Virus record (IMG/VR): IMGVR_UViG_3300042402_002641
Coordinates: 62,001 to 126,000 of that record
DNA length: 64,000 bases
Reading direction: 5' to 3' (one strand)
Position numbers and translations under genes: made by a program. The notes below the pieces were generated by a model. That model was not told the origin of the DNA. It did not search any database and was given only the letters and a program-made list of their open reading frames with translations. This document shows, one piece after another, positions 7,462 to 22,473 of this stretch (its first letter is position 1; every line of letters begins with the position of its first letter).

Positions 7462-7472
7462 GCAACAGTTTA

Positions 7473-7550
<78 letters not shown>

Positions 7551-7570
7551 CAACGCAGCAGCACAGCAAT

Positions 7571-7646: not shown

Positions 7647-7933
7647 TTACAGCAGCAACAGCAGCAGAGAGAACGCACAGTGTACCGGCATCCCAATCCC
7701 ATGGATCCTCTAGATCCCTTTAAACGTTGGTATCGCCAGCTATGGCCCCTGCAGCGTGTGGGAGTGTGGATCTGCGCAGCTGTAGTGGTGTGGGCACTGC
7801 TGCTGTGGGTCACCATCTAACAGCAGCAACAGCAGCAGGGGCAGAGCGCAGCGAGATATCTGAGGAACCCTAAGGGTTCAAGGGTCTTTACATTTTGGTT
7901 GACAGAATGGTGAAATGGTGCTATAATTATAAC

Positions 7934-8272
7934 ATGAACTTAGAAAAGCCCACTCGTAAAAAGCGTCAAGACCGTACTCATATCATCTATGAGCTACGTG
8001 TCAACGGACTGTCTTACATAGGCGTCACTGCCAAGACTGAGACTACTATTAATAAGAGTGTTCTTGCTCGTGCAGCCAAGCACTTCTACAGAGCCAAGAA
8101 AGAGAACAAGGACTGGCTCTTGTGCCGGGCTCTGCGCTCGCTGAACGACAAGAGCGAGATAGAAGTACTTGTTCACGAAACACTCAGAGGCAAGGCAGCG
8201 GCACACCGGCGTGAGGTGGCTCTGCGCCGTGAAATTAACCCTGCGCTGAACACGGATGTTCGCGGGGACTGA
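7934..8272 (+). CDS. GIY-YIG domain protein
   Basis: IIYEL...SYIGVT, conserved R, E, and LN; ATG 6 nt after the -10 box (leaderless). Confidence 0.65.
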   Translation: MNLEKPTRKKRQDRTHIIYELRVNGLSYIGVTAKTETTINKSVLARAAKHFYRAKKENKDWLLCRALRSLNDKSEIEVLVHETLRGKAAAHRREVALRREINPALNTDVRGD

Positions 8273-8328
8273 TTGACAGCACAGCAGATTGGCACTATAA
8301 TTAACACATACACACAAAGGAGCGAGCA

Positions 8329-8517
8329 ATGTCATTATTCGATCAAGACTACAAAGTCATACAGGGTCTACAGCAACGCCTGGGCGGGTTGGGTCTCCTA
8401 GAGACTCTGACCTACATAGAGTCCAACACTGCTGAGTTCTCACTGCAGGAACTTCGCAGCTTTTACCACATCATGAGCGAGATGCGTCAGCTGTTCGCGC
8501 CTGCAGAAGCTGGTTGA
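8329..8517 (+). CDS. Small early protein
   Basis: Own promoter and AAGGAGCGAG RBS. Confidence 0.7.
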   Translation: MSLFDQDYKVIQGLQQRLGGLGLLETLTYIESNTAEFSLQELRSFYHIMSEMRQLFAPAEAG

Positions 8518-8569
8518 CAGCGTTGCAGAATGGTGCTATAATACACACATGTTAACAAAGGAGCGAACG

Positions 8570-8839
8570 ATGTCAGCATTAGCAAAGTTTATAGAACAGA
8601 AGAATCACTGGAACAGCTTCTTCAAGGGCGAGCAATACGAGATCGCTACACAGGCAGGGCGTCAACGTGTAGCAGATATGATCGACTCTGCACTTAGCCC
8701 AGAGAACCTTACCTGCGATGGCGAGCTGCCCAGGTCAGAAGTACAGCGCCGCTACCGAGAGCTGATCACAGCTGCCAAGCAGTTGAAGAAGTTGGACCCT
8801 TCAGTTACATTCTACGAATACTCAGAGGAGATTGCATGA
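8570..8839 (+). CDS. Early hypothetical protein
   Basis: Own promoter, AAGGAGCGAA RBS before ATG 8570; LSPENLTCDGE motif. Confidence 0.75.
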   Translation: MSALAKFIEQKNHWNSFFKGEQYEIATQAGRQRVADMIDSALSPENLTCDGELPRSEVQRRYRELITAAKQLKKLDPSVTFYEYSEEIA

Positions 8840-8997
8840 GACCCTACGAGTGTTTTTATCGTAATCAACGTTGCTCTGTAATGGCTGAGTCCAGCTACAG
8901 CGCACAGCAGAAAGCAGCCACGATATTCAAGGCACGTAAAAGCCATGAAGTGAGTGTGGTTTTAGCAGATGTTGTGGTTGACACAGCAGCAGTTTGA
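8836..8997 (+). CDS. Small early protein (53 aa)
   Basis: GAGGAG RBS, ATGA overlap with upstream stop. Confidence 0.55.
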   Translation: MRPYECFYRNQRCSVMAESSYSAQQKAATIFKARKSHEVSVVLADVVVDTAAV

Positions 8998-9039
8998 GCA
9001 TATAATATACACTTACACACACTAATAGGAGCGACGACT

Positions 9040-9489
9040 ATGGGAACACGATCAAGAGTAGGTGTCATGCATGGCACAGTCTGCAAGAGTGTCTACTGTC
9101 ACTACGATGGCTATCTAGAGTACACAGGCAAGCTGCTGCTTGACCACTACAACTCAGCAACAGCCAACGAGTTGGTAGCACGTGGAGACAACAGTGGAGT
9201 TCAGAAGTCCCTCGAGGACATGAACTTCTACACGGATCGTGGCGAAACCAATGTCAGCTGGCAGGTTGCGCACACCTTTGAAGAGTTCCTTGAGCAGGTC
9301 CACAACTGCGGGGGCGAGTACTACTATATCATGCGTGATGGTGAGTGGTACGCTGGCTCAGTCTACGGTGCCAAGGGCTTGGTCATGAATGGGTTGGTTC
9401 CCCTAGCAGAAGCTGTTGCTGCCAACACCATTGAGCAATTGACTGCAGAAACAACAGAAACCCAGATAGCACAAGTGTTATTCAAATAG
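9040..9489 (+). CDS. Early hypothetical protein
   Basis: MGTRSRVG...SVYCHYDGY; promoter plus AGGAGCGA RBS. Confidence 0.75.
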   Translation: MGTRSRVGVMHGTVCKSVYCHYDGYLEYTGKLLLDHYNSATANELVARGDNSGVQKSLEDMNFYTDRGETNVSWQVAHTFEEFLEQVHNCGGEYYYIMRDGEWYAGSVYGAKGLVMNGLVPLAEAVAANTIEQLTAETTETQIAQVLFK

Positions 9490-9554
9490 GGGTTGACAAC
9501 AGCCCCAAATGGTCGTATAATACACACATGTTAAACACAAATAGGAGCGAAACT

Positions 9555-10658
9555 ATGCAGATTATTCTTAGTGCAGGCAAGTACGGTAAGCCTAATCAAA
9601 TCTATGCAGGCATCCAATTGACCCTAGATCAGCCCTTTGTGAGCAGGCCCAAGGAGGGCTACGAAGGCTTCATCAAGGTGGTCAATGACGGAGCAAACAT
9701 CCGTGGCGGTGGCACCACCTGCGAAGTACTGTGCAATGAGGCTGACATCGAATATGTTACTAGTTCAACCCCCGTACCACAAGGAATCAGCATGCTGAAA
9801 GCACTGAAGAAGACTGCCAAGAACTCCGCAGAAGTCACGGACTTCACACAGGTCAAAGTGCCAGACGCTGTGGTTGCGCACGAGACAGACGAAGAGATCG
9901 TAGAGCGACTGCGCAATCGTTTCCAGGTCTTGCAGGACATGACCCAGGCAGTCAAAGAAGGTACTGTACGAGCAATGATCGTCACAGGCCCTCCGGGTGT
10001 AGGCAAGAGCTTCGGAGTTGAAGAAGTTCTGGGCAAACAGGATCTGTTCAATACACTGGGCAACAAGCGTCCCAAGTACGAGATCGTGAAAGGTGCTATG
10101 AGTGCCATTGGCCTCTACTCTAAGCTCTACCACTACAGTGAAAAGGGCAATGTCATCGTGTTTGATGACTGCGATTCAGTGCTGTTAGATGACTTGAGCT
10201 TGAACATTCTCAAGGCCGCTTTGGATTCTAGCAAGAAGCGTACTATCTCGTGGAACACTGATTCACGTATGTTGCGTTCAGAGGGAGTGCCTGACAGCTT
10301 TGAGTTCAAGGCAGGTGCTATCTTTATCACCAACATTAAGTTTGAGAATGTACGCTCTAAGAAGCTACAGGATCACTTGGCGGCACTAGAGTCACGCTGT
10401 CACTACGTGGATCTGCAGATGGACACAGACCGTGAAAAGGTCCTGCGTATCAAGCAGATCGTAGAAGATGGCATGCTGGACTCCTACGAGTTTGAGCCTG
10501 TGGTCAAGGACGAAGTCGTAGACTTTATCGTAGAGAACCGTTCAAAGATGCGTGAGTTGAGCCTGCGTACGGTGCTGAAGGTAGCTGATCTGCGCAAGAG
10601 CTTTGCTACCAATTGGAAAGGCATGGCAGAAGTCACTGTGATGCGGGGAGCACGATAA
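9555..10658 (+). CDS. AAA-family P-loop ATPase
   Basis: Walker A GPPGVGKS, Walker B VIVFDDCD, arginine finger ALESR; RBS AGGAGCGAA places start at 9555. Confidence 0.85.
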   Translation: MQIILSAGKYGKPNQIYAGIQLTLDQPFVSRPKEGYEGFIKVVNDGANIRGGGTTCEVLCNEADIEYVTSSTPVPQGISMLKALKKTAKNSAEVTDFTQVKVPDAVVAHETDEEIVERLRNRFQVLQDMTQAVKEGTVRAMIVTGPPGVGKSFGVEEVLGKQDLFNTLGNKRPKYEIVKGAMSAIGLYSKLYHYSEKGNVIVFDDCDSVLLDDLSLNILKAALDSSKKRTISWNTDSRMLRSEGVPDSFEFKAGAIFITNIKFENVRSKKLQDHLAALESRCHYVDLQMDTDREKVLRIKQIVEDGMLDSYEFEPVVKDEVVDFIVENRSKMRELSLRTVLKVADLRKSFATNWKGMAEVTVMRGAR

Positions 10659-10888
10659 TGGCAGGGTGCCAATATCTGGGTCCGGAATACGACCCTCACA
10701 GACACAGAGGGCCCACGCCCTTCTGTGGTGCTGAGACCATTCAGGGCAAGAGCTACTGTCACGATCACTACTACGTGGTCTACAAGAAGGGCACAGCAGT
10801 CAACGGCAAGAAGCGTGAGAAGGCTGTGGACCAAGAGATCGCTGAGCTTAAACGCCAGCAGGAGTTAGAGGAGATAGATAATGTTTGA
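10658..10888 (+). CDS. GcrA C-terminal-domain-like zinc-binding protein
   Basis: CQYLG...P.FCG.....GKSYCHDHY..VY resembles GcrA C-terminal CxWPxG..FCG....PYCxxH...Y. Confidence 0.55.
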   Translation: MAGCQYLGPEYDPHRHRGPTPFCGAETIQGKSYCHDHYYVVYKKGTAVNGKKREKAVDQEIAELKRQQELEEIDNV

Positions 10889-11081
10889 TAGCATGCTGAA
10901 GATTGGGCTAGCCATAGTGTTGATAGTGGTCTTGTTGGCCATTGGACCCTGGTTAGTGATTTGGGCTCTGAATACACTGTTCCCCCTGTTGGCTATCCAG
11001 TTCACGTTTTGGACTTGGTGTGCTGTGGTGATCCTGGGCACGTTCTTTCGAGCGAATGTGTCTGTAAAACGGAAGGATTGA
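10881..11081 (+). CDS. Small membrane protein
   Basis: Two hydrophobic segments; GAGGAG RBS. Confidence 0.65.
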   Translation: MFDSMLKIGLAIVLIVVLLAIGPWLVIWALNTLFPLLAIQFTFWTWCAVVILGTFFRANVSVKRKD

Positions 11082-11163
11082 GGTTGCAGATGATCTGTGA
11101 TTCATGTATTATTAACTAATGCTGAAGAACAGATAATCAGCTGTTAACAAAGGAAACTTAAAA

Positions 11164-11436
11164 ATGAAGAGATTCAATCCAGAAACAAAGACTTTCAAGG
11201 TCTTCCACGCACTGTACAAAGGTGCTGCTCTTACCCAAAGCCAAGCTGAAAAGCGTTTTGGTGTCAAGAACTTGGCTGCAGAAGCCAGCCGTATCCGCCA
11301 AGCAGGCTACGCTGTTTATTCAAACAGCCGCACAGCTGGCAACGGCGTAACAGTCACAGAGTATGTGATGGGCACACCTAGCCGTGAAATCGTAGCACTT
11401 GGTTACAAAGCCAAGAGCATGGGCATCACAGTCTAA
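11164..11436 (+). CDS. Winged-helix/HTH-like small protein
   Basis: LTQSQAEKRFGVKNLAAEASRIRQAGYAVY HTH-like pattern followed by a beta wing. Confidence 0.6.
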   Translation: MKRFNPETKTFKVFHALYKGAALTQSQAEKRFGVKNLAAEASRIRQAGYAVYSNSRTAGNGVTVTEYVMGTPSREIVALGYKAKSMGITV

Positions 11437-11463
11437 GCAGTTGTTTCTCGACCCTAAGGGTCG

Positions 11464-11536
11464 TTCAAAGAACAAGCCGATTCGCTCCCGGGGCGTTCTT
11501 TGGAGGGTGTTGTAGAAATACAACACCCTTTTTCTT
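11464..11536 (+). ncRNA. Candidate 3'-UTR sRNA copy 1: hairpin with loop AUUCGCUCC, then intrinsic terminator
   Basis: TTCAAAGAAC/GTTCTTTGGA outer stem, CCG/CGG inner stem, loop 11480-11488; terminator AGGGTGTTGTA-GAAA-TACAACACCCT-TTTT. Confidence 0.6.
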
Positions 11537-11750
11537 TGGCCGGCACTCCCAAAAAGAGGTTGACAGATTGGATACATAGTGTTATAATACACACATGAAC
11601 AAGCAAGGAGTGAACCAAATGGCATTCAATTACGAAAAATACTACGCAACTCTTTTCCGTAAGCGTGGTTACCACCTAATCAACGGTGTGTGGTACTACG
11701 ATGCAGAAGGCAAGTACCAAGTTTACAACACAGCATCCTAAGGAGTGACT

Positions 11751-12383
11751 ATGCAATTCACTGCTGAACAAGTTTGGGCCTGTGCTGCTGCTGCGCAGCG
11801 TATCAACGAAGGCTACTTCAAAGAAGATCAATGGGACACAGCTGAGGCTGGAGTCAAGATCAAGACCGCCAACAAGCTCTTGGTCAAAGATTGGCTTCGC
11901 ACCAATGACTACTCCCAGATCACTGCTGCAGATACTGCAGAGGGGATCCGTGCTCGTAACCATTTCAAATCTTACACTCTACTGGCCATAGCTGGCAGAC
12001 TCAACGAGTTCCAAGAGACTGCAATGAAGCTGGCAGCCAAAGAAGAGTTCACAGGTCGCGATATGTATGATTTCGCTGTGATCTCATGCTTGCCTTCAGT
12101 GTCTGTGCGTGATGCTGCGAACGCGGAACTCAAACGCGAGATCTATACCTCAGAACAGCTCCACGGAGCTGAAGGGGATAGGATCCAAGGTGAAGTCACT
12201 GTGATCAACACCCGTTTCAATCCTGACTACAACAAGCACAAGATCCGGGGTCGCATGGGCGAGAGCTTCGTGGACTTTTGGTTCGGGTCTGCTCTAGAAG
12301 GCACAGTAAAGATCAAGGCCAAGATCAAGAGCCAACGTGGCGATAAAACAACACAGCTAAACTATGTGAAAATACTTGGTTGA
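11751..12383 (+). CDS. Early hypothetical protein, possible C-terminal OB-like domain
   Basis: AGGAGTGA RBS; beta-rich C-terminus ending TQLNYVK. Confidence 0.7.
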   Translation: MQFTAEQVWACAAAAQRINEGYFKEDQWDTAEAGVKIKTANKLLVKDWLRTNDYSQITAADTAEGIRARNHFKSYTLLAIAGRLNEFQETAMKLAAKEEFTGRDMYDFAVISCLPSVSVRDAANAELKREIYTSEQLHGAEGDRIQGEVTVINTRFNPDYNKHKIRGRMGESFVDFWFGSALEGTVKIKAKIKSQRGDKTTQLNYVKILG

Positions 12384-12461
12384 CAAAGAGCGAAATTGGT
12401 GTTATACTTATGACACTGAGAGATTAATTGTTTTAACTGTTCTAACTAGCGAGGTCTTAAT

Positions 12462-13547
12462 ATGGCAAAAGCACAAGATATTTCCGTCCGTCAAGTTGGC
12501 CCTAAGGGTGCCAAGAAGGCGATCCGACACGCAATCAAGATGCGTCGTCCAACATTCCTCTGGGGTCCTCCAGGCATTGGCAAATCAGATCTCGTCAAGC
12601 AGATCGGTGATGACGCTGGTCGTGAGGTCATTGACGTTCGCCTGGCTCTTTGGGAACCCACAGACATCAAGGGCATCCCTTATTACAATGCAGAGCAGGG
12701 CAAGATGGTTTGGGCTCCTCCTGCAGAACTGCCCACTGATGCAGACTCTAAGGCAATCATCTTCCTAGATGAATTGAACTCTGCACCTCCAGCAGTCCAG
12801 GCCGCGGCCTATCAGTTGATCCTGAACCGCCGTGTTGGCACATACCATTTGCCCAAGGGCGTGGATGTTGTGGCCGCAGGTAACCGCGAAGGTGACCGTG
12901 GTGTCACATACCGTATGCCTGCTCCGTTGGCTAACCGTTTCATCCACTTGGAAATGAAAGTGGACTTTGATGACTTCCAAGACTGGGCTACTTTGCACAA
13001 GGTGCATCCAGAGGTTGTGGGTTATGTGGGTTTTGCCAAGCAGGACTTGTATGACTTTGATCCTAAGAGTTCCTCTAAGGCGTTTGCAACTCCACGCTCG
13101 TGGGTGTTCGTTAGCGATCTACTGTCAGATGATGACTGCGACAACGACACATTGACAGCACTGATCGCAGGTGCTATTGGTGACGGCTTGGCTTCTAAGT
13201 TCATGGCTCACCGCAAGATCGCAGGCAAACTGCCCAAGGCTGGTGACATCCTCGACGGCAAGGTCAAGGACCTGCAGATCAAGGAAGTGTCAGCGATGTA
13301 TTCTTTGACTGTTAGCCTGTGCTATGAGCTCAAGGACCGTGCAGAGAAGAAGGCTAAGAACTGGGACGATATGGCAGACTGCTTCTTCCGCTACATGATG
13401 GATAACTTCCCAACTGAGTTGGTTGTGATGGGTGCCAAGACCGCGCTCACCAACTATGACTTGCCCTTGGACGCTACTAAGATGAAATCCTTCGATGAAT
13501 TCCACAAGCGTTTTGGTAAGTATGTTTTGAGTGCCATGGAGAATTAA
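12462..13547 (+). CDS. MoxR/dynein-related AAA+ ATPase
   Basis: GPPGIGKS, IIFLDELN, AAGNR, PAPLANRF, TPRSW. Confidence 0.9.
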   Translation: MAKAQDISVRQVGPKGAKKAIRHAIKMRRPTFLWGPPGIGKSDLVKQIGDDAGREVIDVRLALWEPTDIKGIPYYNAEQGKMVWAPPAELPTDADSKAIIFLDELNSAPPAVQAAAYQLILNRRVGTYHLPKGVDVVAAGNREGDRGVTYRMPAPLANRFIHLEMKVDFDDFQDWATLHKVHPEVVGYVGFAKQDLYDFDPKSSSKAFATPRSWVFVSDLLSDDDCDNDTLTALIAGAIGDGLASKFMAHRKIAGKLPKAGDILDGKVKDLQIKEVSAMYSLTVSLCYELKDRAEKKAKNWDDMADCFFRYMMDNFPTELVVMGAKTALTNYDLPLDATKMKSFDEFHKRFGKYVLSAMEN

Positions 13548-13564
13548 GACCTCGCCCATGGCCG

Positions 13565-13602
13565 GGCTACGGGCTCCTCAGGGTTCGTAGCCCACCTTTT
13601 TT
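13565..13602 (+). terminator. Intrinsic terminator
   Basis: GGGCTACGGGCTC-CTCA-GGGTTCGTAGCCC then T tract. Confidence 0.7.
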
Positions 13603-13658
13603 GGTTGACAGGTGTGTAAATAGATGCTATAATATACACATACTAAGGAGAGCGACTA

Positions 13659-14867
13659 ATGGACCCAATCATAGAGAAACTAACAACTGCTAGAGTAGGA
13701 CTGTTGCTCAAAGCACCGTTCTTCGGCAACATGGCAACTCGTATGAAGTTGATTGATGCTTCAGACTGGTGCCCTACCGCCGCAACCAACGGTCGTGACT
13801 TCATGTATAACAAGAAGTTCGTAGAGAAACTTTCTGTTAAGAAACTAGAGTTCCTGTTCGCACATGAGATCTGTCATGCCGTATTTGATCACTTTGGTCG
13901 TTTAGGTTCGCGTATTCCACAACTGGCGAACATCGCACAGGACTACGCTGTGAACCAGATCCTGGTAGATGAACGCATTGGTGAGAAGATCACTGAGGTA
14001 AAAATCTGCTATGACGCCAAGTATCGTGGATTGGCCTGGGAAGAGATCTATGACGAGCTCTTCGAAAAAGCAGAGAAGATCCCTATGGAACAACTGCTGG
14101 CACAACTAGGTGATCTCCTAGACGAGCACATCAAAGAAGAAGAAGGTGCTGGCTCGGGTGGTGGTGACAAGACCAAAGACGGCAAGGGCAAGCCCTCGTT
14201 GACTAAAGAAGAAGCCGAACAGATCCGCGATGAGATCAAGAACGCCATGATCCAAAGTGCCGCGGCCGCTGGTGCTGGTAAGGTGCCCGCAGGTATCCAA
14301 CGCTTGATCAAGAACTGGACTGAGCCTAAGATGGACTGGCGCCAGTTGGTGCAACAAGAGATCCAAAGCATTGTTCGCAATGACTACTCCTTTCAGCGTG
14401 TGAATCGCAAGAGTATGCACAGTGGTGCTATCTTGCCAGGCATGAAAGAAGCAACTACCATTGACGTGGCAATCTCAATCGATATGTCAGGTTCTATCGG
14501 TGATGAAGATGCAACTGCATTCCTCAGCGAGATCAAGGGCATCATGGACCAGTACGAGGACTTCAAGATCAACCTGTGGTGCTTTGACACCGATATCTAC
14601 AACTGGAAACAGATCACACACGACGAAGCTCATGAACTGGTAGAATATGAGCCACAGGGCGGCGGTGGCACAGACTTCGAAGTCAACTGGACCTTCATGG
14701 AAGAGAATGGTATCCAGCCCAAGAAGTTCATCATGTTCACAGACGGCTACCCATGTGGCGGTTGGGGCAACGAGGACTACTGCGACACGATCTTTATCGT
14801 CAAAGGCAATGAGAAAGCAGAAGCACCCTTTGGGCAGACTGTGATCTATGAAAAAGAGGCGGCGTGA
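13659..14867 (+). CDS. vWA domain plus putative metallopeptidase (DUF2201-like), partner of the MoxR ATPase
   Basis: TAATNG, HExxH (AHEICH), MIDAS DMSGS, GGGGTDF, FTDG. Confidence 0.88.
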   Translation: MDPIIEKLTTARVGLLLKAPFFGNMATRMKLIDASDWCPTAATNGRDFMYNKKFVEKLSVKKLEFLFAHEICHAVFDHFGRLGSRIPQLANIAQDYAVNQILVDERIGEKITEVKICYDAKYRGLAWEEIYDELFEKAEKIPMEQLLAQLGDLLDEHIKEEEGAGSGGGDKTKDGKGKPSLTKEEAEQIRDEIKNAMIQSAAAAGAGKVPAGIQRLIKNWTEPKMDWRQLVQQEIQSIVRNDYSFQRVNRKSMHSGAILPGMKEATTIDVAISIDMSGSIGDEDATAFLSEIKGIMDQYEDFKINLWCFDTDIYNWKQITHDEAHELVEYEPQGGGGTDFEVNWTFMEENGIQPKKFIMFTDGYPCGGWGNEDYCDTIFIVKGNEKAEAPFGQTVIYEKEAA

Positions 14868-15436
14868 TTGGAGTGCCAGGGGTTGTGGCTTTTCTGCCAC
14901 AGGCCCCGCTGCTTACGTGTGCGTGTAACCTATCGGTTGACATCTAGGCAGATTGGTGTTATAATATAGACATATTAACAGAGAAGGAGCGGTAATGATG
15001 GAACTGATTTTAGCATTCGTAGCAGGTATGATCGTAATGGACGTGATGTGGGCCTGGCGCATGGGCATCCCCCAGATGCTGTGGTATCGCTTCCGTAATC
15101 GCAACAACCCCCAACCTAACTTTGATCAGGAGTAATCATGATGAGTCATCTCGTAGCATTCTTCCTTGGAATCTTCGTGGCAACTGTGGGCATCACAGGT
15201 GTGGCCAGTGTGGCAGACAAGGGCGTTAATCAAGTTCAACAGGTAATGAAAGAGGCAGCTAAATGAGCAAGATGGCAGATCTCACATACGATATCGAGCA
15301 ACTGTACATTGAGGGCCATTCGCCTAGGATGATCTCAATCATGCTGGAGTGCCCCATTGAACAGGTTTATGGATGGTTAGAAGAAGTAGGCCTTGATCCC
15401 GAAGACTACAGCCCGCATGCCACTATAAATAGTTAG

Positions 15437-15763
15437 ATGAGCAAGTTAGAGTTCCTAGCAAGGCCCTTGGTGGCCTTTGATCCCTACAACAAGGATCACA
15501 GACGCTACTACGCAGAGTTCCTTGAACTCGGCGGTTGGGGTCGCTGCCCTGTGAGGTTCATCTGCCCAGAAGACACTGGCTTTGATCTGCCTACTATGAT
15601 ACAACGTAGTTTGATCAGCTACTACATCGATCGTGAGTTCGGCGGGGGAAAGTTGGCTCGTGACCGATCAGACATGCTGCGCCGCAAGGCCGACGCTCTC
15701 TACAAAGAAGCGGGCAAACTGCGCATTGAATCTAAAGCTCTGCTAAAACCCAGGCGGTCATAG
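15437..15763 (+). CDS. Hypothetical protein
   Basis: TATAAATA-N5-ATG start. Confidence 0.65.
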   Translation: MSKLEFLARPLVAFDPYNKDHRRYYAEFLELGGWGRCPVRFICPEDTGFDLPTMIQRSLISYYIDREFGGGKLARDRSDMLRRKADALYKEAGKLRIESKALLKPRRS

Positions 15764-15839
15764 GGTCTTTAGACATATCGGTTGACAGATTGGCGACTTG
15801 GTGCTATACTATAGGTATAGTGAATAACAAGGAGCGAAG

Positions 15840-16106
15840 ATGTATCTACCATTACTAACTGAAAAAGAACAAAAGGCTGTGGTCCGCGCACTGCGTGGCT
15901 GGCAGTTTATCCGTAAAAATCACGGTAGCCTGTTCGATCGTGGTTCAGCAGACAGCTACTACGGTCGTTCACGTATTCCACACTACGGCGGCGTTGGTGG
16001 TGACTCTGGACCTAGGGTCGAAGTCACTGATGCCAAGAGCGTGGCTGAATACATGGCTGGCTATGATGAAAACGAACAATTTGGTGACAAGAAAGACTGG
16101 CGCTGA
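15840..16106 (+). CDS. Early hypothetical protein
   Basis: Promoter plus AAGGAGCGAA RBS; HGSLFDRGSADSYYGR. Confidence 0.7.
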   Translation: MYLPLLTEKEQKAVVRALRGWQFIRKNHGSLFDRGSADSYYGRSRIPHYGGVGGDSGPRVEVTDAKSVAEYMAGYDENEQFGDKKDWR

Positions 16107-16441
16107 TGGAGGCTCTACGTGAAATCACAGAATGGACGGGTGTTGAGTATCGCAGTCCCAACCACGACTACCTATTGGACGGTGACAAGATCATTGCTTA
16201 TCGCCCCTGGGGCACTGCAGAGATCCGTGTGCTCCGGTCAGGTATTAAGATCGACCGTCGCGGCCGGAAGTTCGTCAAATTGGATCCAAACCCCTTTAAT
16301 CTCATAGAAAGTAAATCAAATGCAATCACAGTCACTGGTTCTAAAGGTCAAGTCTATTCGGTCGATGCAGAAGCCCATACCTGTACCTGTCCAGGGTTCC
16401 AATTTCGAGGTGCCTGCAAACACCTGGCAAGCCATGGTTGA
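16106..16441 (+). CDS. SWIM zinc finger protein
   Basis: CTCPGFQFRGACKH. Confidence 0.8.
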   Translation: MEALREITEWTGVEYRSPNHDYLLDGDKIIAYRPWGTAEIRVLRSGIKIDRRGRKFVKLDPNPFNLIESKSNAITVTGSKGQVYSVDAEAHTCTCPGFQFRGACKHLASHG

Positions 16442-16521
16442 ACGCATGATGTCAGGCAAATGATTGGTTGACATTTTGGCTAACCTGTGCTATAATATAC
16501 ACATACTAAGGAGAGCGAGCA

Positions 16522-16710
16522 ATGACAGTTAAGTTTGAAGATCTGCGTGAAGGTTCTGTGGTCATAGTGCGTGGTGCGTTTGGCACAGGCCCTGAAGAGC
16601 GTGTTAAGGTTGAAGGCTTGGACAGGGACATTAAGAATGGCTACCCTGGCATTGACTACAACGGTTCTTGGGCCTACTTGGACCAGGTAGTGCGTGTGGT
16701 GCAATACTAA
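16522..16710 (+). CDS. Small early protein
   Basis: Promoter plus GGAGAGCGAG RBS. Confidence 0.65.
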   Translation: MTVKFEDLREGSVVIVRGAFGTGPEERVKVEGLDRDIKNGYPGIDYNGSWAYLDQVVRVVQY

Positions 16711-16931
16711 TGAAGAAGTTCACCTTTTGGCGTAATGCCATCATATCAGAACTCTACGTGGTTGATGCGGCAACTGAAGAACAAGCACGTGAGATGCTGC
16801 AGAATGGGGAAGTGGAAGTGTTCAATGAGGAATGGATAGATTGGGCCACGGACGATTTCGAACTTGAGCACGTGGAAATCATTGACCCTTTGTATAGAAT
16901 GGTAAAAGACTATGACACCGCAGGAACATGA
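16710..16931 (+). CDS. Small acidic protein
   Basis: TAATG coupling; VDAATEEQAREM. Confidence 0.6.
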   Translation: MKKFTFWRNAIISELYVVDAATEEQAREMLQNGEVEVFNEEWIDWATDDFELEHVEIIDPLYRMVKDYDTAGT

Positions 16932-17111
16932 ATACATTCGTAGAGCTGTAGAGGCCCTGGAGAATCCCGAGATCACTCCCATGACACAGCGAAAGATCCT
17001 AAGGACCATGGAACAGATCTGTGGCAAAAATGCCACACTGATTGAACAGAAATTGGTTGACACAGTCGAAGATCGGTTGTATAATAGTAATACTTAAACA
17101 AAGGAGCGAAT

Positions 17112-17741
17112 ATGCCTAATTGGTGTTCAAATCATATCACGGTGCGTGGCACCGACCCTGTGGCAATCAAACGATTGGCTGATGCGTTTGATGCGGGTGA
17201 GTTCTGCGGTACGGTAGTGCCTATGCCAGAAGAACTCAACATCACCTCAGGCCGCCTGGGCGATGGTGTTGAGCAGGCTGAACTAGAGGCCAAGAGTGCG
17301 GCCAACCTAGAGAAGTATGGTTATGCCAACTGGTATGACTTCAATGTGGCCAATTGGGGCACCAAGTGGGAAGTCGGTGGCGATGGCAGCACAGCAGAGA
17401 TCGAAGATGATGGCTTGAGCTTCTCTGCACCCTTTGAATCAGCCTGGTCGCCACCGATTGGAGTCTGTGAGGCCCTGGTTGAACAGGGCTTTGAAGTCAC
17501 TCTTTACTACTACGAACCCGGCATGGGCTATGTGGGCAAGTGGGAGGATGGCATCGACGACTGCTACGAGTATGGTGGTGAGAAAGCCGCTACAGTTCGA
17601 GCTGCCATCGGTGATGAGCTGGACGACATGTTCGGCATCTCAGAGTCCATGGCTGAATACGAAGCAGAGAACGAAGAGGAAGAACTCACAGAATGGATCA
17701 AGGACGGTGTTGAACAGAAGAAGGCTTTGATCGCACTATGA
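17112..17741 (+). CDS. DUF1281/YubB-like ferredoxin-fold protein
   Basis: MPNWCSN, WYDFNVANWGTKW, FESAWSPP, YYEPGM; RBS AAGGAGCGAAT. Confidence 0.75.
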   Translation: MPNWCSNHITVRGTDPVAIKRLADAFDAGEFCGTVVPMPEELNITSGRLGDGVEQAELEAKSAANLEKYGYANWYDFNVANWGTKWEVGGDGSTAEIEDDGLSFSAPFESAWSPPIGVCEALVEQGFEVTLYYYEPGMGYVGKWEDGIDDCYEYGGEKAATVRAAIGDELDDMFGISESMAEYEAENEEEELTEWIKDGVEQKKALIAL

Positions 17742-17997
17742 GAACCTTGAAGTTCCAATTTGAAGTGATCTGTGCCTCAGAGGGCACAGCTGACGAAACC
17801 TTGGTTGAATCAATGATTGATTTGGCCATGCAAGATCTGGTCTATGACGACGAGTTTATCGTGGCCCTAGGCGAGAAAGAGAGTGTCACCATCCGCGTGT
17901 CTAGATTGGACAAATGAATGGTTGACATTTAGGGTAGCCGATGCTACTATTATAACATGCTGATTGGCATATTTTTACACACACAGGAGTAATTGAA

Positions 17998-18300
17998 ATG
18001 AGTACAGAGAAGAAGTTTGCGGTTGCTGGAGTTAGCACACTCGACGGCAAGACCAAGGTGCGTTTTGCCAATGATACCATGCGTATCAAGATCTTGGGCA
18101 AGAACGGCCACACAGATGTCAACCTCGTGGATCTTCCACGTGAAATGACCAAGGCTGAGATCGCTCAGCACATGGTCGAGGTTGGCTTTGGCAAGGGCAA
18201 TGCAGCTATCGAAGCTGCCATCGCCTACGTAGCCAAGAAAAATCCTGCACCCAAGCAGGTCAAGGCCACTGTCGCGAAGACAGAGGCTGTGGTTGCCTGA
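17998..18300 (+). CDS. Conserved-looking hypothetical phage protein
   Basis: FAVAGVS...KVRFAND..RIKIL.KNGHTDV; own promoter; RBS AGGAGTAA. Confidence 0.7.
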   Translation: MSTEKKFAVAGVSTLDGKTKVRFANDTMRIKILGKNGHTDVNLVDLPREMTKAEIAQHMVEVGFGKGNAAIEAAIAYVAKKNPAPKQVKATVAKTEAVVA

Positions 18301-18367
18301 TCCGATTCGCTCCCGGTAATCAGCAACCTTGATAGAGACCCTACTAACACTAGGGTCTCTTTTTTTT
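18291..18367 (+). ncRNA. Candidate 3'-UTR sRNA copy 2: hairpin with loop AUUCGCUCC, then intrinsic terminator
   Basis: GGTTG/CAACC, CTGA/TCAG and CCG/CGG stems, loop 18305-18313; terminator AGAGACCCTA-N7-TAGGGTCTCT-T7. Confidence 0.6.
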
Positions 18368-18426
18368 GGTTGACATTTTGGCTAAAGTGCGTTATAATTG
18401 CTACTTACACACACAAGGAGCCCACA

Positions 18427-18678
18427 ATGTTTACAAACTGCATAGCCTACGCAAAGTTAGTTTACAACAAAAAACTTAACGCATACAAAATGCAGATTGC
18501 ATTTAATGTACACAAAAAGTTAGTAGGCACTAACTACAAATATTTGTTTCCTGTACAAAGCAAATGCAACTATGTTAGCGGGGACTTACTTGCAGAAAAT
18601 TTAGAAGCAGAAGTGCAACGCACTGTGGCTTTTGCACAACAAAACTTGCGTACAACACAAATTGTAATAGTAGACTAA
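18427..18678 (+). CDS. Early hypothetical protein (TC-depleted island)
   Basis: Promoter at 18370, AAGGAG RBS, ATG 18427. Confidence 0.7.
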   Translation: MFTNCIAYAKLVYNKKLNAYKMQIAFNVHKKLVGTNYKYLFPVQSKCNYVSGDLLAENLEAEVQRTVAFAQQNLRTTQIVIVD

Positions 18679-18763
18679 GTTGTAGGGCCTTTACAGCACA
18701 CACTTGCATTTTGGACAGGTGTGTGCTATAATTGTTTTTTAAACACAGCATTAGGAGCGAACT

Positions 18764-19135
18764 ATGCAAGCAACGACATTTAACGTAAGCGACAAGCTAA
18801 CACTGGTAAGCACAGACACAGACACAGACAGCGTTAGCACAACATACAACTGTAACGTAGAAGTGCAACTAGCAGGCGACAGCATATGGGACTGCGAGCT
18901 AGAGGCAGTTACAGTTACAAGCATACACATACACGAGAACTTTTGGGAAGACACAAGCACAGTACACATTGCAGTTTGCTACAACGTAGACGGTGTAGAC
19001 GGCAGTGAAGTAGAGGGCAGCTGGCGTATGTATACAGACAGCGGCTTTGAAGAGGCTGTTAGTGCTTTGCTAGGCACAGACGTTAGATTTACGGAGCAGG
19101 GAATGCAAGACGACGGCTTTGCGAGCATGGAATAA
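18764..19135 (+). CDS. Highly acidic early protein (TC-depleted island)
   Basis: AGGAGCGAA RBS; D/E-rich; YTDSGFE...FTEQGMQ. Confidence 0.75.
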   Translation: MQATTFNVSDKLTLVSTDTDTDSVSTTYNCNVEVQLAGDSIWDCELEAVTVTSIHIHENFWEDTSTVHIAVCYNVDGVDGSEVEGSWRMYTDSGFEEAVSALLGTDVRFTEQGMQDDGFASME

Positions 19136-19200
19136 AAACAACAGCACACTTGCATTTTGGATGTAAGTGTGCTATAATACATTTTTAAAGAAAGCACTAG

Positions 19201-19341
19201 ATGAAAACAGCAACTAAACAAAAAATTGACAGCTTAATGCTACAGCTACAAGACTTGTTAGAGGACGAGTACAGCGAACATGACGCTATACAGACAGCGT
19301 TTAACGACCTAGCTATTGCGCTAGACGATGTTGTAAATTAA
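19201..19341 (+). CDS. Small acidic helical protein (46 aa, TC-depleted island)
   Basis: MKTATKQKIDSLMLQLQDLLEDEYSEHDAIQTAFNDLAIALDDVVN; own promoter. Confidence 0.55.
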   Translation: MKTATKQKIDSLMLQLQDLLEDEYSEHDAIQTAFNDLAIALDDVVN

Positions 19342-19431
19342 CAACACAGGGGTGTAGGCCCCGCTGCTTAAGGGGTTGACGCAGCCCCCTTTTGGCAGTA
19401 TAATGAACACATACACACACAGGAGCACTCC

Positions 19432-19722
19432 ATGAACATCACCCAGATCAACTCAGCCATCATGCAAGGCCAATTCACCAACGATGAACTAACCTCTGTG
19501 ATCGATGCGGTCAAGTTTGCTCGAGCACGACTCAACAGAGAGGTCAAGAGCGGCCTGATGGTGGGAGACAATGTGGAGTTTACATCCAGCAAGACTGGAC
19601 GGGCCATGCGTGGGTTCGTAACCAAAGTAGCCATCAAGTATGTCACTGTGAACACGGGTGCAGGCCTTTGGCGAGTGCCGGCCAACATGCTGACTCGGGT
19701 AAAAGAGTCAGAGCTGGCGTAA
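19432..19722 (+). CDS. Early hypothetical protein (SH3-like C-terminus)
   Basis: VGDNVEF...GFVTKV..KYVTV...WRVPANML; promoter plus RBS. Confidence 0.7.
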   Translation: MNITQINSAIMQGQFTNDELTSVIDAVKFARARLNREVKSGLMVGDNVEFTSSKTGRAMRGFVTKVAIKYVTVNTGAGLWRVPANMLTRVKESELA

Positions 19723-19726
19723 ATAC

Positions 19727-20107
19727 ATGATGCTAGAACTTGTTATCGTATTCGCTCTGGGGTGGATCTTAGGCTGGAAGATCAATGATGCTCTAAGAAC
19801 CGCTGCCATCAAAGCCCTACTCAAAGAACTGGGAGTCACTGACCAGGATCTCCGGGCAGCCGCAGCTCGAAACGGCATTGAAATCTCAGCGGCCCCTGAC
19901 ACAGCAGCTGATGAAACTGTGGTGGAAGTCAAGCTGGAACAGCACGGGGGGCAGATCTTTGCTTACCGCAAGAGTGATGACACATTCTTGGCTCAGGGCA
20001 CAGACAGAGATTCTCTGATCGAGCGATTGAACCAGACCATGCGGCCCTGTAGGATCTTGATCGACAAAGAAGACGGCGCTGATCTGTTGCAGAAAAACAA
20101 CACCTAA
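19727..20107 (+). CDS. Membrane-anchored hypothetical protein
   Basis: N-terminal hydrophobic helix; TAAATA upstream. Confidence 0.65.
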   Translation: MMLELVIVFALGWILGWKINDALRTAAIKALLKELGVTDQDLRAAAARNGIEISAAPDTAADETVVEVKLEQHGGQIFAYRKSDDTFLAQGTDRDSLIERLNQTMRPCRILIDKEDGADLLQKNNT

Positions 20108-20147
20108 ATTGGTTGACAGTTTGGCAGTTCAGTGTTATAATACACAC

Positions 20148-20384
20148 ATGACACAAACACAAATAGACAACACCCTACAGTGGACCGGAGCAGCGGCCAT
20201 CATCGCCATGCACGTACTCAACGCAGCAGGCCCCGAGGCTTATCCCTGGAACATCATCGCAGCTTTCATCGGAACTGTTGCATTCCTTTCATGGACCATC
20301 CGTGTGAGAAACCTGCCGCAGTTCACGGTAAACGTGGTAGCATTAGCCATAGGCTTTGTAGGGTTATATCGAGCGTTTGGTTGA
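20148..20384 (+). CDS. Small multi-pass membrane protein
   Basis: Three hydrophobic segments; ATG 6 nt after TATAAT. Confidence 0.65.
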   Translation: MTQTQIDNTLQWTGAAAIIAMHVLNAAGPEAYPWNIIAAFIGTVAFLSWTIRVRNLPQFTVNVVALAIGFVGLYRAFG

Positions 20385-20416
20385 CACATTGGCGTTTTGG
20401 TGTTACAATAGATACA

Positions 20417-20630
20417 TAGACAGTTAGGAAAGAGCAAAAGGTTACCTACACCGTTAGGTACTTAGAGGGTTAGGACAGTGGCGACGGTCACGCTCAATCT
20501 AGGTACATGAAACAGGGCAGTGATGCTCGGAGAAGCGGCGGATCTTGTAGGCAGTAATGACGGTACAAGCCCTTGTGGAGACGGTCCCTGGGGTAGACTA
20601 CATGTTCCTTTGCTTTTTCCCAACTGTCTA
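20417..20630 (+). ncRNA. Unidentified structured ncRNA (~215 nt)
   Basis: Dedicated promoter TTGACA(20381)-17-TACAAT; ~24-bp closing helix 20417-20441/20607-20630; several internal helices; no RBS-led ORF. Confidence 0.65.
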
Positions 20631-20702
20631 ACAGCCAGGTTGACAACTAGCCAAATTAGTTGTATAATAGACACATACAAACAAACATTAGGAGCGAACC
20701 CA

Positions 20703-21086
20703 ATGACTAAAGTAAATTATGACCGTTTTGCCTCGTTTGACATTAACGAGTGCTGTGACCACTTTGATAGCGAGAAACAGAGCAACTGGAAGAAGATCGG
20801 CAAGTTCATCGTAGCAGATGGACAAGAGTACGCCCACATTATGGAAACAGAGTTCGACTTTGAAGACGTGGGTAGTGGCGAGTACGAGGCCTTTGACGCA
20901 GGTGTTAAGTATGCCCTTACTAAGATGAACATTGCCTTTGAGGCAGCAGGTTTGGACCTACAGATCTGCGAGGTAGACCTTGTAGAGAGCATGGGCTTTA
21001 TGATGGTACGTTGCGATGACGAGCCCGAGGACTTTGTCAAGCGTGTGATGAAGAAGCCCGTGATGATGGTAGACAGCTGGATTTGA
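20703..21086 (+). CDS. Acidic early protein
   Basis: Promoter at 20640 and AGGAGCGAA RBS place start at 20703. Confidence 0.72.
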   Translation: MTKVNYDRFASFDINECCDHFDSEKQSNWKKIGKFIVADGQEYAHIMETEFDFEDVGSGEYEAFDAGVKYALTKMNIAFEAAGLDLQICEVDLVESMGFMMVRCDDEPEDFVKRVMKKPVMMVDSWI

Positions 21087-21176
21087 TAGAGTGCCAAAGT
21101 TCAACCCGCCACTAGACCCTGCAACTCGCCTGGGCACTTCGCGGGTTGACACTGAGGCTTTATTCAAGGATGTGAC

Positions 21177-21413
21177 ATGGGTTGGGTAGTCTACGATGAG
21201 AAGTCGGGTCATATGCAGAAGTACTACAAATTGGCTTCTACAGCCAAGCGGATCTGTACTCAGCACAACACTGAGAGAGAATACGATTTCTACACATATC
21301 GTGCTCAATCCACGTGGTCCTTCTGCAGCTACAGGGACTACGAAGGGGTCTTGATGGGACTTAGAGGGGATGCTCTAAAGATGTGGCAGTTCTGCAACAC
21401 TGAAATTGGTTGA
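21177..21413 (+). CDS. Hypothetical protein
   Basis: AAGGA RBS; stop overlaps next -35 box. Confidence 0.6.
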   Translation: MGWVVYDEKSGHMQKYYKLASTAKRICTQHNTEREYDFYTYRAQSTWSFCSYRDYEGVLMGLRGDALKMWQFCNTEIG

Positions 21414-21583
21414 CACTTTGGTAGATCGGTGCTATACTAGAGACTAAGTTAAACAAAAGGAGCGGACTATGTTGAAACTGATCGGAATCGCGGCTGTGGC
21501 CTACATTGGTTGGGTAACTGGCTTGATACAGGCCACCTTGATGATCACTGCAGGCGTATTGATCGCCATTGCTGGAGTCTAAC

Positions 21584-21784
21584 ATGGCCTACAGAATAGT
21601 CAACGATGTGCTCCAGGGATACGGACCGCGAAAGGGTCTCGAGGGGCCGTTCAACATCGGTGGTCGCCCACTCTACTACGATGCCCGAGAGGGCAGCTAC
21701 TGGGATCCCCGCACGGATTTCTACGTGGATCAATCAGAGGTCAACTACCTGCACAACGAACTCATGCGAATCATGGGTGGTTGA
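21584..21784 (+). CDS. Small hypothetical protein
   Basis: GLEGPF...LYYDAREGSYWDPRTDFYV. Confidence 0.65.
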   Translation: MAYRIVNDVLQGYGPRKGLEGPFNIGGRPLYYDAREGSYWDPRTDFYVDQSEVNYLHNELMRIMGG

Positions 21785-21841
21785 CAGTTTGGCTAAAAGA
21801 TCGTATAATACGTACATACACACAGCAACTAGGAACACACA

Positions 21842-22174
21842 ATGAAACTGCTGATCACCACACAAGTCTACGAGAACTACGGTGCCCACGATTGGGACGG
21901 AGTTGGCGCATGCCCACAGTACTGGAAGGCCAAAGGCGGTTCAGACTATGTGATCCGGAACATCAACGTGAATCAAGTCACTGAGACTGTGATGGCTGTG
22001 CGTGGCCAGATCGAGCAGGACAATGACGCCTTCCGCGAGTCAATCATCGATTGGAGCATAGTCTCCGATGATGCGCTCACAGAGTTTGAGCAGAGCCAGT
22101 TGGCCTACGAAGGCGTGATCCGTTATGCTTCCAAAGAGATCCAGCCTGCGGACCCAGTCTACTACGGCGCCTAA
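21842..22174 (+). CDS. Hypothetical protein
   Basis: TQVYENYGAHDWDG..CPQYWKAKGG; own promoter. Confidence 0.7.
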   Translation: MKLLITTQVYENYGAHDWDGVGACPQYWKAKGGSDYVIRNINVNQVTETVMAVRGQIEQDNDAFRESIIDWSIVSDDALTEFEQSQLAYEGVIRYASKEIQPADPVYYGA

Positions 22175-22242
22175 AGTGGTTGACAATTTGGCTAAAAGAC
22201 CGTATAATTAACACATACACAAACACTCACAGAAAGACACAA

Positions 22243-22428: not shown

Positions 22429-22473
22429 CAGCTGGGACAGAACCTAGTATAATACACACACAAGGAGCAGACT

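Follow-up and report, generated by a model that had tools for sequence, protein, structure and literature searches.

Several described systems regulate translation at the ribosome-binding sites of sets of mRNAs or of single phage operons. In the anti-Shine-Dalgarno (aSD)-loop sRNAs of alpha-proteobacteria, alpha-r14/NfeR1 and also AbcR and MmgR, several hairpins each display an identical, ultraconserved C/U-rich motif in the unpaired loop, on stems that differ in sequence, and these motifs pair with about 8 nt of the translation initiation region of many mRNAs and block ribosome binding (PMC10746234). The loops of the c4 antisense RNA of phages P1 and P7 pair with complementary sites around a ribosome-binding site of a phage mRNA and block translation, with loop and target sequences differing in step between related phages, which gives heteroimmunity (PMC12197685; PMC8198154). 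In phage T4, a class of early mRNAs is shut off through their translation initiation regions by two proteins: RegA, which competes with the ribosome on about 30 mRNAs, and the endoribonuclease RegB, which together with S1 reads an extended Shine-Dalgarno motif, GGAGRAYARAA, shared by early genes (PMC3014915). In the 3' UTR-derived sRNAs of enterobacteria of the CpxQ, SroC and DapZ type, a conserved seed lies just upstream of the intrinsic terminator of the parental mRNA.

Here we describe hairpins at the ends of early transcripts of an uncultured lake jumbo phage and many aquatic relatives, whose conserved loops are the exact complement of a lineage-specific extension (tag) of the ribosome-binding site on many of the phage's own early genes. 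The locus was analysed in a window of 64,000 nucleotides (IMG/VR record IMGVR_UViG_3300042402_002641, positions 62,001 to 126,000), with the rest of the 280-kb genome, which is about 79% complete, and related viral contigs used for comparison. The data point to RNA-based control of a whole tagged gene class, although no experiment has yet shown pairing or repression.

Anti-tag hairpins and tagged ribosome sites

The 15-mer CCGATTCGCTCCCGG occurs exactly twice in the window, and no other match with up to two mismatches is present, against a chance expectation of 0.03. Each copy caps a hairpin that is associated with a stop codon and is followed at once by an intrinsic terminator (Table 1). The outer stems of the two hairpins are unrelated in sequence. 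The fold of hairpin 2 is exceptional relative to shuffled sequences (z = -3.45), whereas the isolated hairpin 1 is less so (z = -1.35). The first-pass annotation had described two hairpins with an identical CCG/CGG-closed 9-nt loop on outer stems that differ but pair, each between a stop codon and a terminator, a loop that is the reverse complement of the extended ribosome site of the early genes, and two host genes whose own ribosome sites lack GGAGCGA. The observation is confirmed: every one of these sequence-level statements held. The second stop codon lies inside the 5' arm of hairpin 2.

Table 1 Positions, within the window, of the hairpins, their host genes and the tagged ribosome sites.
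Feature	Position	Strand	Description
Shorter and variant tags	8319–8325	+	GGAGCGA(G) of gene 8329–8517; a similar shorter tag, GGAGCGA(C), at 9028–9034 for gene 9040–9489; the variant GGAGAGCGA precedes genes 13659 and 16522
Tagged ribosome site	8560–8567	+	GGAGCGAA of gene 8570–8839; duplex with the loop -13.1 kcal/mol
Promoter, tagged ribosome site and AAA-ATPase gene	9493–10658	+	Perfect sigma-70-type promoter 9493–9521; GGAGCGAA at 9544–9551; true start 9555; first gene of the operon that ends with hairpin 1
Host gene 1	11164–11436	+	90-aa winged-helix protein (HTH_39); last gene of the operon that starts at promoter 9493; ribosome site untagged; stop codon 11434–11436
Small extra hairpin	11449–11463	+	CGACCC-UAA-GGGUCG, between the stop codon and hairpin 1; function unknown
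Anti-tag hairpin 1	11464–11504	+	Outer stem 11464–11473 with 11495–11504; 3x3 internal loop; closing stem CCG/CGG 11477–11479 with 11489–11491; loop AUUCGCUCC 11480–11488; 15-mer 11477–11491
Intrinsic terminator 1	11505–11537	+	10-bp G+C-rich stem and GAAA loop (11505–11528), then a U run
Tagged ribosome site	15831–15838	+	GGAGCGAA of gene 15840–16106
Tagged ribosome site	17103–17111	+	GGAGCGAAU of gene 17112–17741; full 9-nt complement of the loop; best duplex, -14.3 kcal/mol
Host gene 2	17998–18300	+	100-aa protein with no family match; own promoter 17922–17950 (10 of 12 consensus positions); ribosome site untagged; stop codon 18298–18300
Anti-tag hairpin 2	18291–18328	+	Closing stem 18302–18304 with 18314–18316; loop AUUCGCUCC 18305–18313; 15-mer 18302–18316; stop codon of host gene 2 in the 5' arm
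Intrinsic terminator 2	18334–18367	+	10-bp stem (18334–18360), then U8
Tagged ribosome site	18754–18761	+	GGAGCGAA of gene 18764–19135
Tagged ribosome site	20691–20698	+	GGAGCGAA of gene 20703–21086

The motif GGAGCGA occurs ten times in the window against 4.1 expected, and none of 100 shuffles reaches ten. Eight copies are plus-strand ribosome sites, and the other two are the hairpins read on the opposite strand. The octamer GGAGCGAA is the commonest 8-mer upstream of starts and marks eight genes of the genome, six of them in the early region, which has 15 perfect TTGACA-N17-TATAAT promoters. Host gene 1 has no promoter of its own, and belongs to an operon whose first gene carries the tag.

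The early region is built from very similar promoter-leader cassettes with ACACACAU-type leaders, and all four genomic copies of the 13-mer lie on the same DNA strand. These features would fit a DNA-level origin, either as a mobile terminator-promoter cassette, as in the promoter-early stem-loop cassettes of T4-type phages, or as an inverted remnant of a duplicated leader kept by recombination. However, similarity to the leaders is limited to the 8–9-nt loop, the stems covary to keep pairing while their sequence changes, and the loop motif changes together with the tag between lineages (below). We consider this explanation very unlikely.

Conservation of the hairpins in related phages

Loss of the loop in relatives, or its occurrence there without GGAGCGA ribosome sites, had been set out in advance as grounds for rejecting the proposed link, and the comparison came out in favour of it. 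In about 90 related viral contigs the top of the hairpin is conserved while the stems change with compensating substitutions. The invariant core is the 7-nt loop UUCGCUC, which is kept in both 3' UTR families at 70–85% protein identity. Hairpin 1 is conserved in relatives L001–L080 (our numbering of the related loci) with compensating outer stems, and hairpin 2 is conserved after the homologues of host gene 2 (L082–L115) with covarying closing and outer stems.

A set of 62 distinct hairpins from relatives folds with the loop exposed, on stems of 11–17 bp of very different sequence. In 27 hairpins of the gene-1 type, all four proximal outer pairs show changes on both sides, with 31 compensatory cells against 9.4 ± 3.1 in shuffles (0 of 500), and the slid controls collapse. 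The closing stem covaries from CCG/CGG to CUG/CAG, UCG/CGA or UUGG/CCAA, and the A.C position flanking the loop covaries to G-C or A-U. Single-base loop variants, CUCGCUC in L106 and UUCGCUU in L104, are not matched by changed tags in the flanks examined. In some relatives tandem copies occur, and in some the loop sits on the terminator hairpin itself.

Co-variation of loop and tag between lineages

Relatives with a different ribosome-site tag, GAGGGCA(A), carry two to four hairpin loops with GCCCUC at the syntenic position, after the homologous AAA-ATPase, at a density of 10.3 per kb against 0.13 per kb elsewhere. Among non-redundant UTRs, 64 of 67 loci with the GAGCGA tag have UUCGCUC and none has GCCCUC, whereas 31 of 35 loci with the AGGGCA tag have GCCCUC and none has UUCGCUC. 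A third case, which had been predicted, was found where expected, in a lineage with the tag AGCGAGG and CCUCGCU in the UTR. As the two clear alleles are two lineages, the number of independent co-variation events is small (two to three), and the third case shares the core GCGA with the first and is not fully independent. In a motif-blind test, 25–36% of ribosome sites have a perfect complement of at least 7 nt in their own 3' UTR, against 3–6% in three controls. The same orthologous ATPase gene carries the lineage's own tag in each lineage.

An extended target, C(C/U)GGGAGCGAAUCG, is conserved before the start of a 160-aa gene while its leader diverges. The predicted loop-tag duplex has an energy of -12 to -14 kcal/mol, whereas the same site with a typical 16S tail gives -7.6 kcal/mol. 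The number of strong predicted targets is not exceptional against composition-preserving shuffles of the loop (17 real targets, against a shuffle mean of 5.6 and a maximum of 32), because any CUCC-containing loop hits Shine-Dalgarno sites.

The CUCC within the loop is an anti-Shine-Dalgarno core, and GGAGCGAAC resembles the 5' strand of helix 24 of 16S rRNA in many bacteria, a resemblance that was not itself tested. The loops might therefore act on host Shine-Dalgarno sites or 16S rRNA rather than on phage mRNAs. The host is unknown, the loops match the phage's own lineage-specific tags and the other two tag types do not share the rRNA resemblance; this possibility appears remote.

Proposed mode of action

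We read the two hairpins as the seed-bearing part of a regulatory RNA embedded at the 3' end of early transcripts, each consisting of the hairpin and the adjacent intrinsic terminator, about 70–100 nt. In this model, the exposed loop UUCGCUC(C) and part of its closing stem would base-pair with an 8–14-nt tag, (CC)GGGAGCGAA(UCG), that overlaps the Shine-Dalgarno core and spacer of a set of the phage's own mRNAs, mostly early genes driven by sigma-70-type promoters plus at least one gene elsewhere in the genome. Pairing would compete with the 30S subunit and most likely lower translation of the whole tagged class as the structured 3' RNA accumulates. We hold this reading with moderate confidence. 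The structure, the invariance of the loop, the complementarity and the co-variation of tag and loop between lineages rest directly on the sequences, whereas pairing in vivo, repression rather than protection or activation, release of a separate RNA and the timing are inferred. There is no experimental or end-resolved RNA evidence, and only assembled metatranscriptome contigs were examined. One of them spans positions 11316–11558; such contigs show presence in RNA libraries but carry no information on 5' or 3' ends, and speak neither for nor against a discrete stable 3' fragment made by processing or from an internal promoter. Tag and anti-tag are both made in the early region at the same time, so a simple late switch needs differential stability.

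The first-pass annotation had proposed that the phage may switch off translation of a tagged class of early genes with one seed sequence. This interpretation is supported in that a functional link between the loops and the tagged sites is well supported by comparative evidence, while repression, the release of a fragment of about 75 nt and the temporal switch-off of early genes remain inference. It needs correction on two points. The system is not unique to this phage, but is a family trait of an aquatic phage clade with at least two clear alleles. In addition, the element is anchored to the 3' end of an AAA-ATPase transcription unit whose own first ribosome site is tagged, so self-regulation in cis is a live possibility.

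An element working only in cis would pair with the tagged ribosome site of the first gene of its own mRNA, or with that of the next gene in read-through transcripts, giving autoregulation, insulation of read-through or protection of the 5' and 3' ends rather than regulon-wide control in trans. In all lineages examined the element sits at the 3' end of the AAA-ATPase unit, and that ATPase's own ribosome site carries the lineage's tag; in relatives the anti-tag element follows this ATPase directly. In GAGGGCA-type lineages the first anti-tag follows the stop codon at once, and whole-intergenic folds pair it with the next gene's tagged site. The gene after hairpin 1 in the phage studied here has GGAGUGAA, a match with one G-U pair. 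However, hairpin 2 sits on a monocistronic mRNA with an untagged ribosome site, and the next gene has only GGAGC. Moreover, many tagged genes have their own promoter and no anti-tag in cis, and a distant gene on the other strand keeps a conserved 12–14-nt complementary site. An exclusively cis-acting element is therefore considered unlikely.

Comparison with known systems

Two near-identical hairpins after early genes and before terminators recall lambda nutL and nutR, and strong conservation of the closing stem is typical of protein sites. The hairpin could thus be a nut/boxB-like antitermination site or an operator for a phage RNA-binding protein, with the tag recognized by a protein such as a RegB-like nuclease and the complementarity between the two incidental. 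This alternative seems improbable, as incidental complementarity cannot explain three lineage-specific matched pairs. The loop, UUCGCUC, is 7–9 nt long and not a GNRA-like pentaloop, and no boxA-like element is conserved beside it. Nor does the hairpin mimic a tRNA T-arm, which has a G53-C61 closing pair and a T-loop UUCRANY with A58: the major form closes with A.C, the loop has C where A58 would be, and no tRNA was called there.

The T4 RegA/RegB system is a functional analogue, of which the RNA proposed here would be a counterpart. The T4 effectors are proteins, whereas the recognizer proposed here is an RNA loop. No homologue of RegA (PF01818) or RegB (PF10715) was found in the genome, although this is weak evidence given its incompleteness and a search without a positive control. 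As in the 3' UTR-derived sRNAs of enterobacteria, the seed lies at the mRNA 3' end and shares the mRNA's intrinsic terminator, but processing or an internal promoter is not shown here, and the targets are the phage's own tagged genes.

The element shares with c4 loops that are complementary to a ribosome-site region of a phage mRNA and that change together with their target between related phages. c4 controls one operon (icd-ant) of a temperate phage and is processed from the same transcript upstream of its target. Here, many separately transcribed genes share the tag, the RNA sits at a 3' end before a terminator, and the phages look lytic and jumbo. No Rfam family, including that of C4, is matched at its gathering score; the best sub-threshold match is RF00519, at 18.4 bits against a cut-off of 41.

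As in alpha-r14/NfeR1, an identical conserved C/U-rich motif lies in unpaired loops on stems that differ in sequence, and relatives with tandem hairpins plus a terminator hairpin have the same layout; repression of several mRNAs by the motif was not assayed here. In contrast to these sRNAs, the element is phage-encoded and embedded in an mRNA 3' UTR rather than being an independent gene. Its motif is not the generic CCUCCUCCC, but an anti-Shine-Dalgarno core plus a lineage-specific extension that matches a private tag on the phage's own genes.

The genome and its early region

The window is part of a single viral record of 280,019 bp with 41.8% G+C, which is rated about 79% complete and whose DNA occurs in many lake-water metagenomes. 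No close relative exists among deposited phage genomes, and protein matches of 41–45% identity point to PA5oct-like and other jumbo phages. In the closest cultured phages, which are of the PA5oct type, the homologue of the AAA-ATPase discussed below lies in a tight operon without any hairpin element.

This is a classical early region and possesses 15 perfect TTGACA-N17-TATAAT promoters and six near-perfect ones, all on the plus strand, which is unusually dense. Each is followed by a CA-rich leader of 25–35 nt, and these leaders are nearly uniform and begin A(U/C)ACACAU. Only three strong plus-strand terminators occur in this region, two of which are those behind the hairpins. The third follows a MoxR-like AAA gene, and its stem contains GCUCCUC but not the anti-tag. 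Gene 11164 has no promoter of its own and ends an operon whose first gene encodes the AAA-ATPase. The true start of the ATPase gene is the one with the tagged ribosome site, whereas the mechanical open reading frame starts at an ATG inside the leader. Gene 17998 has its own promoter, matching 10 of 12 consensus positions. Two phage tRNA genes lie at the start of the early region, and relatives carry three tRNAs near the same ATPase.

Positions of the features of the locus and of related sites
Feature	Reference	Position	Strand	Detail
Early region	window	7100–22400		
Stretch of dense promoters	window	7109–22453	plus	
tRNA genes	window	7473–7646		Met (CAT) and Arg (TCT)
Tags GGAGCGAAC	window	8560, 18754, 20691		
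Operon promoter	window	9493	plus	First gene encodes the AAA-ATPase
AAA-ATPase start	window	9555		Mechanical open reading frame starts at 9528
Gene 11164 (gene 1)	window	11164–11436		Stop lies 28 nt upstream of hairpin 1
Contig from an RNA library	window	11316–11558		
Hairpin 1	window	11464–11504		
15-mer, first copy	window	11477		Exact
Sub-threshold match to RF00519	window	11477–11544		
Third strong terminator	window	13564–13593	plus	
Gene 17998	window	17998–18300		Stop lies inside the 5′ arm of hairpin 2
Hairpin 2	window	18291–18328		
15-mer, second copy	window	18302		Exact
Ribosome site of a 160-aa gene	genome	9260	other strand	
GUAAAUACUA motif	genome (locus L206)	9262–9300	minus	About 20 nt upstream of the tagged ribosome site of the 160-aa gene
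Tail-sheath copy of the 13-mer	genome	133551–133565		Locus L207, 8552–8566
Extra UUCGCUCC or tandem hairpins after gene 1	relatives L042 and L046; L011	about 3280–3300; 3310 and 3339		

Structure and conservation of the hairpins

The 15-mer CCGATTCGCTCCCGG occurs at two positions in the window, and no other sequence in the window comes within two mismatches, against a chance expectation of 0.03. The observation made in the first-pass annotation held, as folding yields the two hairpins that it described. In each, CCG/CGG closes the loop AUUCGCUCC on an outer stem unrelated in sequence to that of the other, and a strong intrinsic terminator follows at once. A scan of this genome for further hairpins of this class found none beyond the two.

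Homologues of both host genes were found in 125 viral contigs. The 13-mer GATTCGCTCCCGG, or a variant of one or two bases, is present in the 3′ UTR of most of them, although the proteins are only 70–85% identical. Persistence of the loop on variable stems in related phages had been set out in advance as a check, and this is what was observed: the flanks differ widely yet still pair, and 62 distinct hairpins fold with the loop exposed on stems of 11–17 bp. In an ungapped alignment of 27 gene-1-type hairpins, all four proximal outer pairs show changes on both sides, with 31 compensatory cells against 9.4 ± 3.1 in shuffles (0 of 500), and the signal collapses when the partners are slid. The closing stem covaries as well, to CUG/CAG, UCG/CGA and UUGG/CCAA. 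The A and C that flank the core become G-C or A-U in several lineages, and the invariant unit is therefore the 7-nt loop UUCGCUC. This is a structured RNA element with a sequence-constrained loop. Some relatives carry an extra UUCGCUCC just 5′ of the hairpin, or two hairpins in tandem after gene 1.

No Rfam family reached its gathering score in the window or in three related loci. A weak match was obtained only to RF00519 (suhB/mmgR; 18.4 bits against a cut-off of 41), an sRNA of alpha-proteobacteria that carries an anti-Shine-Dalgarno loop, a property not checked here.

Records that lack a hairpin after gene 1 have the element directly after their ATPase, where it forms a tandem of one hairpin plus a terminator hairpin, both topped by CCG-AUUCGCUCC-CGG or by CUG..CAG. 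The element therefore belongs to the 3′ end of the ATPase unit. In the sublineage of the window a small winged-helix gene lies between the two, and a second copy follows gene 17998.

More than 20 metatranscriptome runs contain the stretch with gene 1 and its hairpin, and one contig from an RNA library spans 11316–11558. These data are assemblies selected with that stretch and give neither transcript ends nor comparable depth.

The ribosome-site tag

In a rough gene call of 392 genes, GGAGCGAA is the commonest 8-mer in the 25 nt before starts. GAGCGAA occurs 21 times in the genome, as expected by composition. Eight of these copies are ribosome sites, and six of the eight lie in the early block. 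Ten of about 22 first genes behind consensus promoters carry GAGCGA. In relatives some sites keep GAGCGAA while losing GGAG, so the extension itself is conserved. The tag GGAGCGAAC resembles the 5′ strand of 16S rRNA helix 24, which in many bacteria reads GGGGAGCGAACAGG. The resemblance was not tested; the other tag types do not share it, and it is probably due to chance.

The 13-mer occurs four times in the genome. One copy is the ribosome site of a 160-aa gene on the other strand, where C(C/U)GGGAGCGAAUCG before the start is conserved in relatives while the leader upstream diverges. It represents a conserved site that pairs with the loop and the 3′ half of the closing stem. The conserved GUAAAUACUA motif upstream of this site, seen in relatives L288–L308, may be a promoter that is not of the sigma-70 type. 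Another copy lies in the tail-sheath gene, and the sheath mRNA contains a 13-nt perfect complement of the hairpin top within the codons for the conserved peptide D-A-P-G-A-N-P. The CCG and GGA codons are nearly invariant in relatives and GCG is kept in about two thirds of them, but the synonymous sites are only partly conserved; this copy could be an internal target or a decoy, or it could be chance.

The loop-tag duplexes have predicted energies of −12 to −14 kcal/mol, compared with −7.6 kcal/mol for the same site with a typical 16S tail. The number of strong predicted targets is not exceptional against shuffled loops, because any CUCC loop hits Shine-Dalgarno sites.

Covariation between loop and tag

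The key result is that loop and tag change together between lineages. More distant contigs of the same collection use another extended ribosome site, (A/C)GAGGGCAA(A/U), and right after the stop of the homologous AAA-ATPase gene they carry hairpins whose loops show the complement of that site. This was confirmed in 80 further loci around that ATPase. The region of 150–280 nt behind the gene contains two to four hairpins with (U)GCCCUC in the loop, the last of which is usually the terminator itself, and the motif is 77 times denser there than in the rest of the loci (10.3 against 0.13 per kb). The orthologous ATPase gene carries whichever tag its lineage uses.

Loop motifs in non-redundant UTRs, by ribosome-site tag of the locus
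Tag in the locus	Distinct UTRs	UTRs with UUCGCUC	UTRs with GCCCUC
GAGCGA	67	64	0
AGGGCA	35	0	31

A prediction was then tested, namely that a contig whose ribosome sites read AAGCGAGGUA should carry the complement after its ATPase. This contig has CCUCGCU 8–17 nt after the stop, although the case shares the core GCGA with the first type and is not fully independent. A further lineage (L166–L205, in which the ATPase is 62–64% identical) has ribosome sites of the form UAGGCAAA(A/C) without a clear Shine-Dalgarno core, and has no UTR element after the ATPase. Two relatives with single-base loop variants, L104 and L106, showed no matching change of tag.

A test that names no motif measured the share of ribosome sites having a perfect complement of at least 7 nt in the 110-nt UTR of their own locus, together with three control comparisons.

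Share of ribosome sites with a perfect complement of at least 7 nt in the UTR
Comparison	Gene-1/2 loci	ATPase loci
Own UTR against own ribosome sites	25%	36%
Own UTR against sites of the other group	6.4%	6.1%
Reversed UTR against own sites	4.8%	4.7%
Opposite strand of the UTR against own sites	2.7%	3.6%

Local co-occurrence of hairpin and tag among relatives, which had likewise been proposed beforehand as a test, was also examined. GGAGCGA made up 34% of GGAG-type ribosome sites in loci with the hairpin, against 3.4% in loci without it, and a tree test on gene 1 followed. Both were rejected as evidence: the records without the hairpin do carry the element elsewhere, after their ATPase, so the contrast reflects only early versus other genome regions, and the tree test had only three independent pairs.

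Discussion

The complementary sequences, the selected display of the hairpin and the lineage-specific matching are best explained by RNA–RNA pairing between the 3′-terminal loops and the tagged ribosome sites. The interpretation in the first-pass annotation, that one seed sequence may switch off translation of a tagged class of early genes, is supported as regards this link; the complementarity, structure and matched alleles were observed directly, whereas pairing is inferred from them and repression is what occlusion of the Shine-Dalgarno core predicts. The RNA could act as the whole mRNA 3′ end or as a released fragment. Because the ribosome site of the ATPase is itself tagged, part of the effect may be autoregulation in cis, but cis action alone does not explain hairpin 2, the many separately transcribed tagged genes or the distant conserved site. 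Readings of the element as a protein-binding site, as a DNA cassette or as directed at host targets do not explain the matched alleles.

A bolder reading, which is not excluded but is offered only tentatively, is that a clade of aquatic jumbo phages uses a private, co-evolving translational code, in which each lineage marks a regulon of its early genes with its own extension of the Shine-Dalgarno sequence and controls them all with matching loops on a 3′-terminal RNA. In this view, divergence of the tag/anti-tag pair between lineages would insulate co-infecting relatives from each other, or let them interfere with each other, as a lytic-phage counterpart of P1/P7 heteroimmunity.

Temporal shut-off of early genes is a core problem for every large lytic phage, and the textbook solutions in T4 are the proteins RegA and RegB. 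An RNA-only solution with a short programmable tag would be a new regulatory logic for phages. It would also explain why early leaders in this clade are so uniform, and would give a natural set of at least two orthogonal tag/anti-tag pairs, directly testable in E. coli reporters and usable in synthetic biology. Moreover, it would show that regulatory RNA–target pairs can be found in uncultured viruses purely from covariation between a 3′ UTR loop and ribosome sites.

To our knowledge, and in agreement with the first-pass annotation, a phage regulon defined by a private ribosome-site tag with matching 3′ UTR loops has not been described; literature searches returned no such system. The architecture equals that of the NfeR1-type sRNAs, in which identical anti-Shine-Dalgarno loops on differing stems pair with about 8 nt at translation start regions (PMC10746234). 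T4 reaches the same end with proteins, and RegB reads an extended Shine-Dalgarno motif on early genes, but no homologue of RegA or RegB was found here, which is weak evidence because the genome is about 79% complete and the search had no positive control. The phage precedent is c4 of P1 and P7, whose loops pair around a ribosome site and differ in step with their targets between the two phages.
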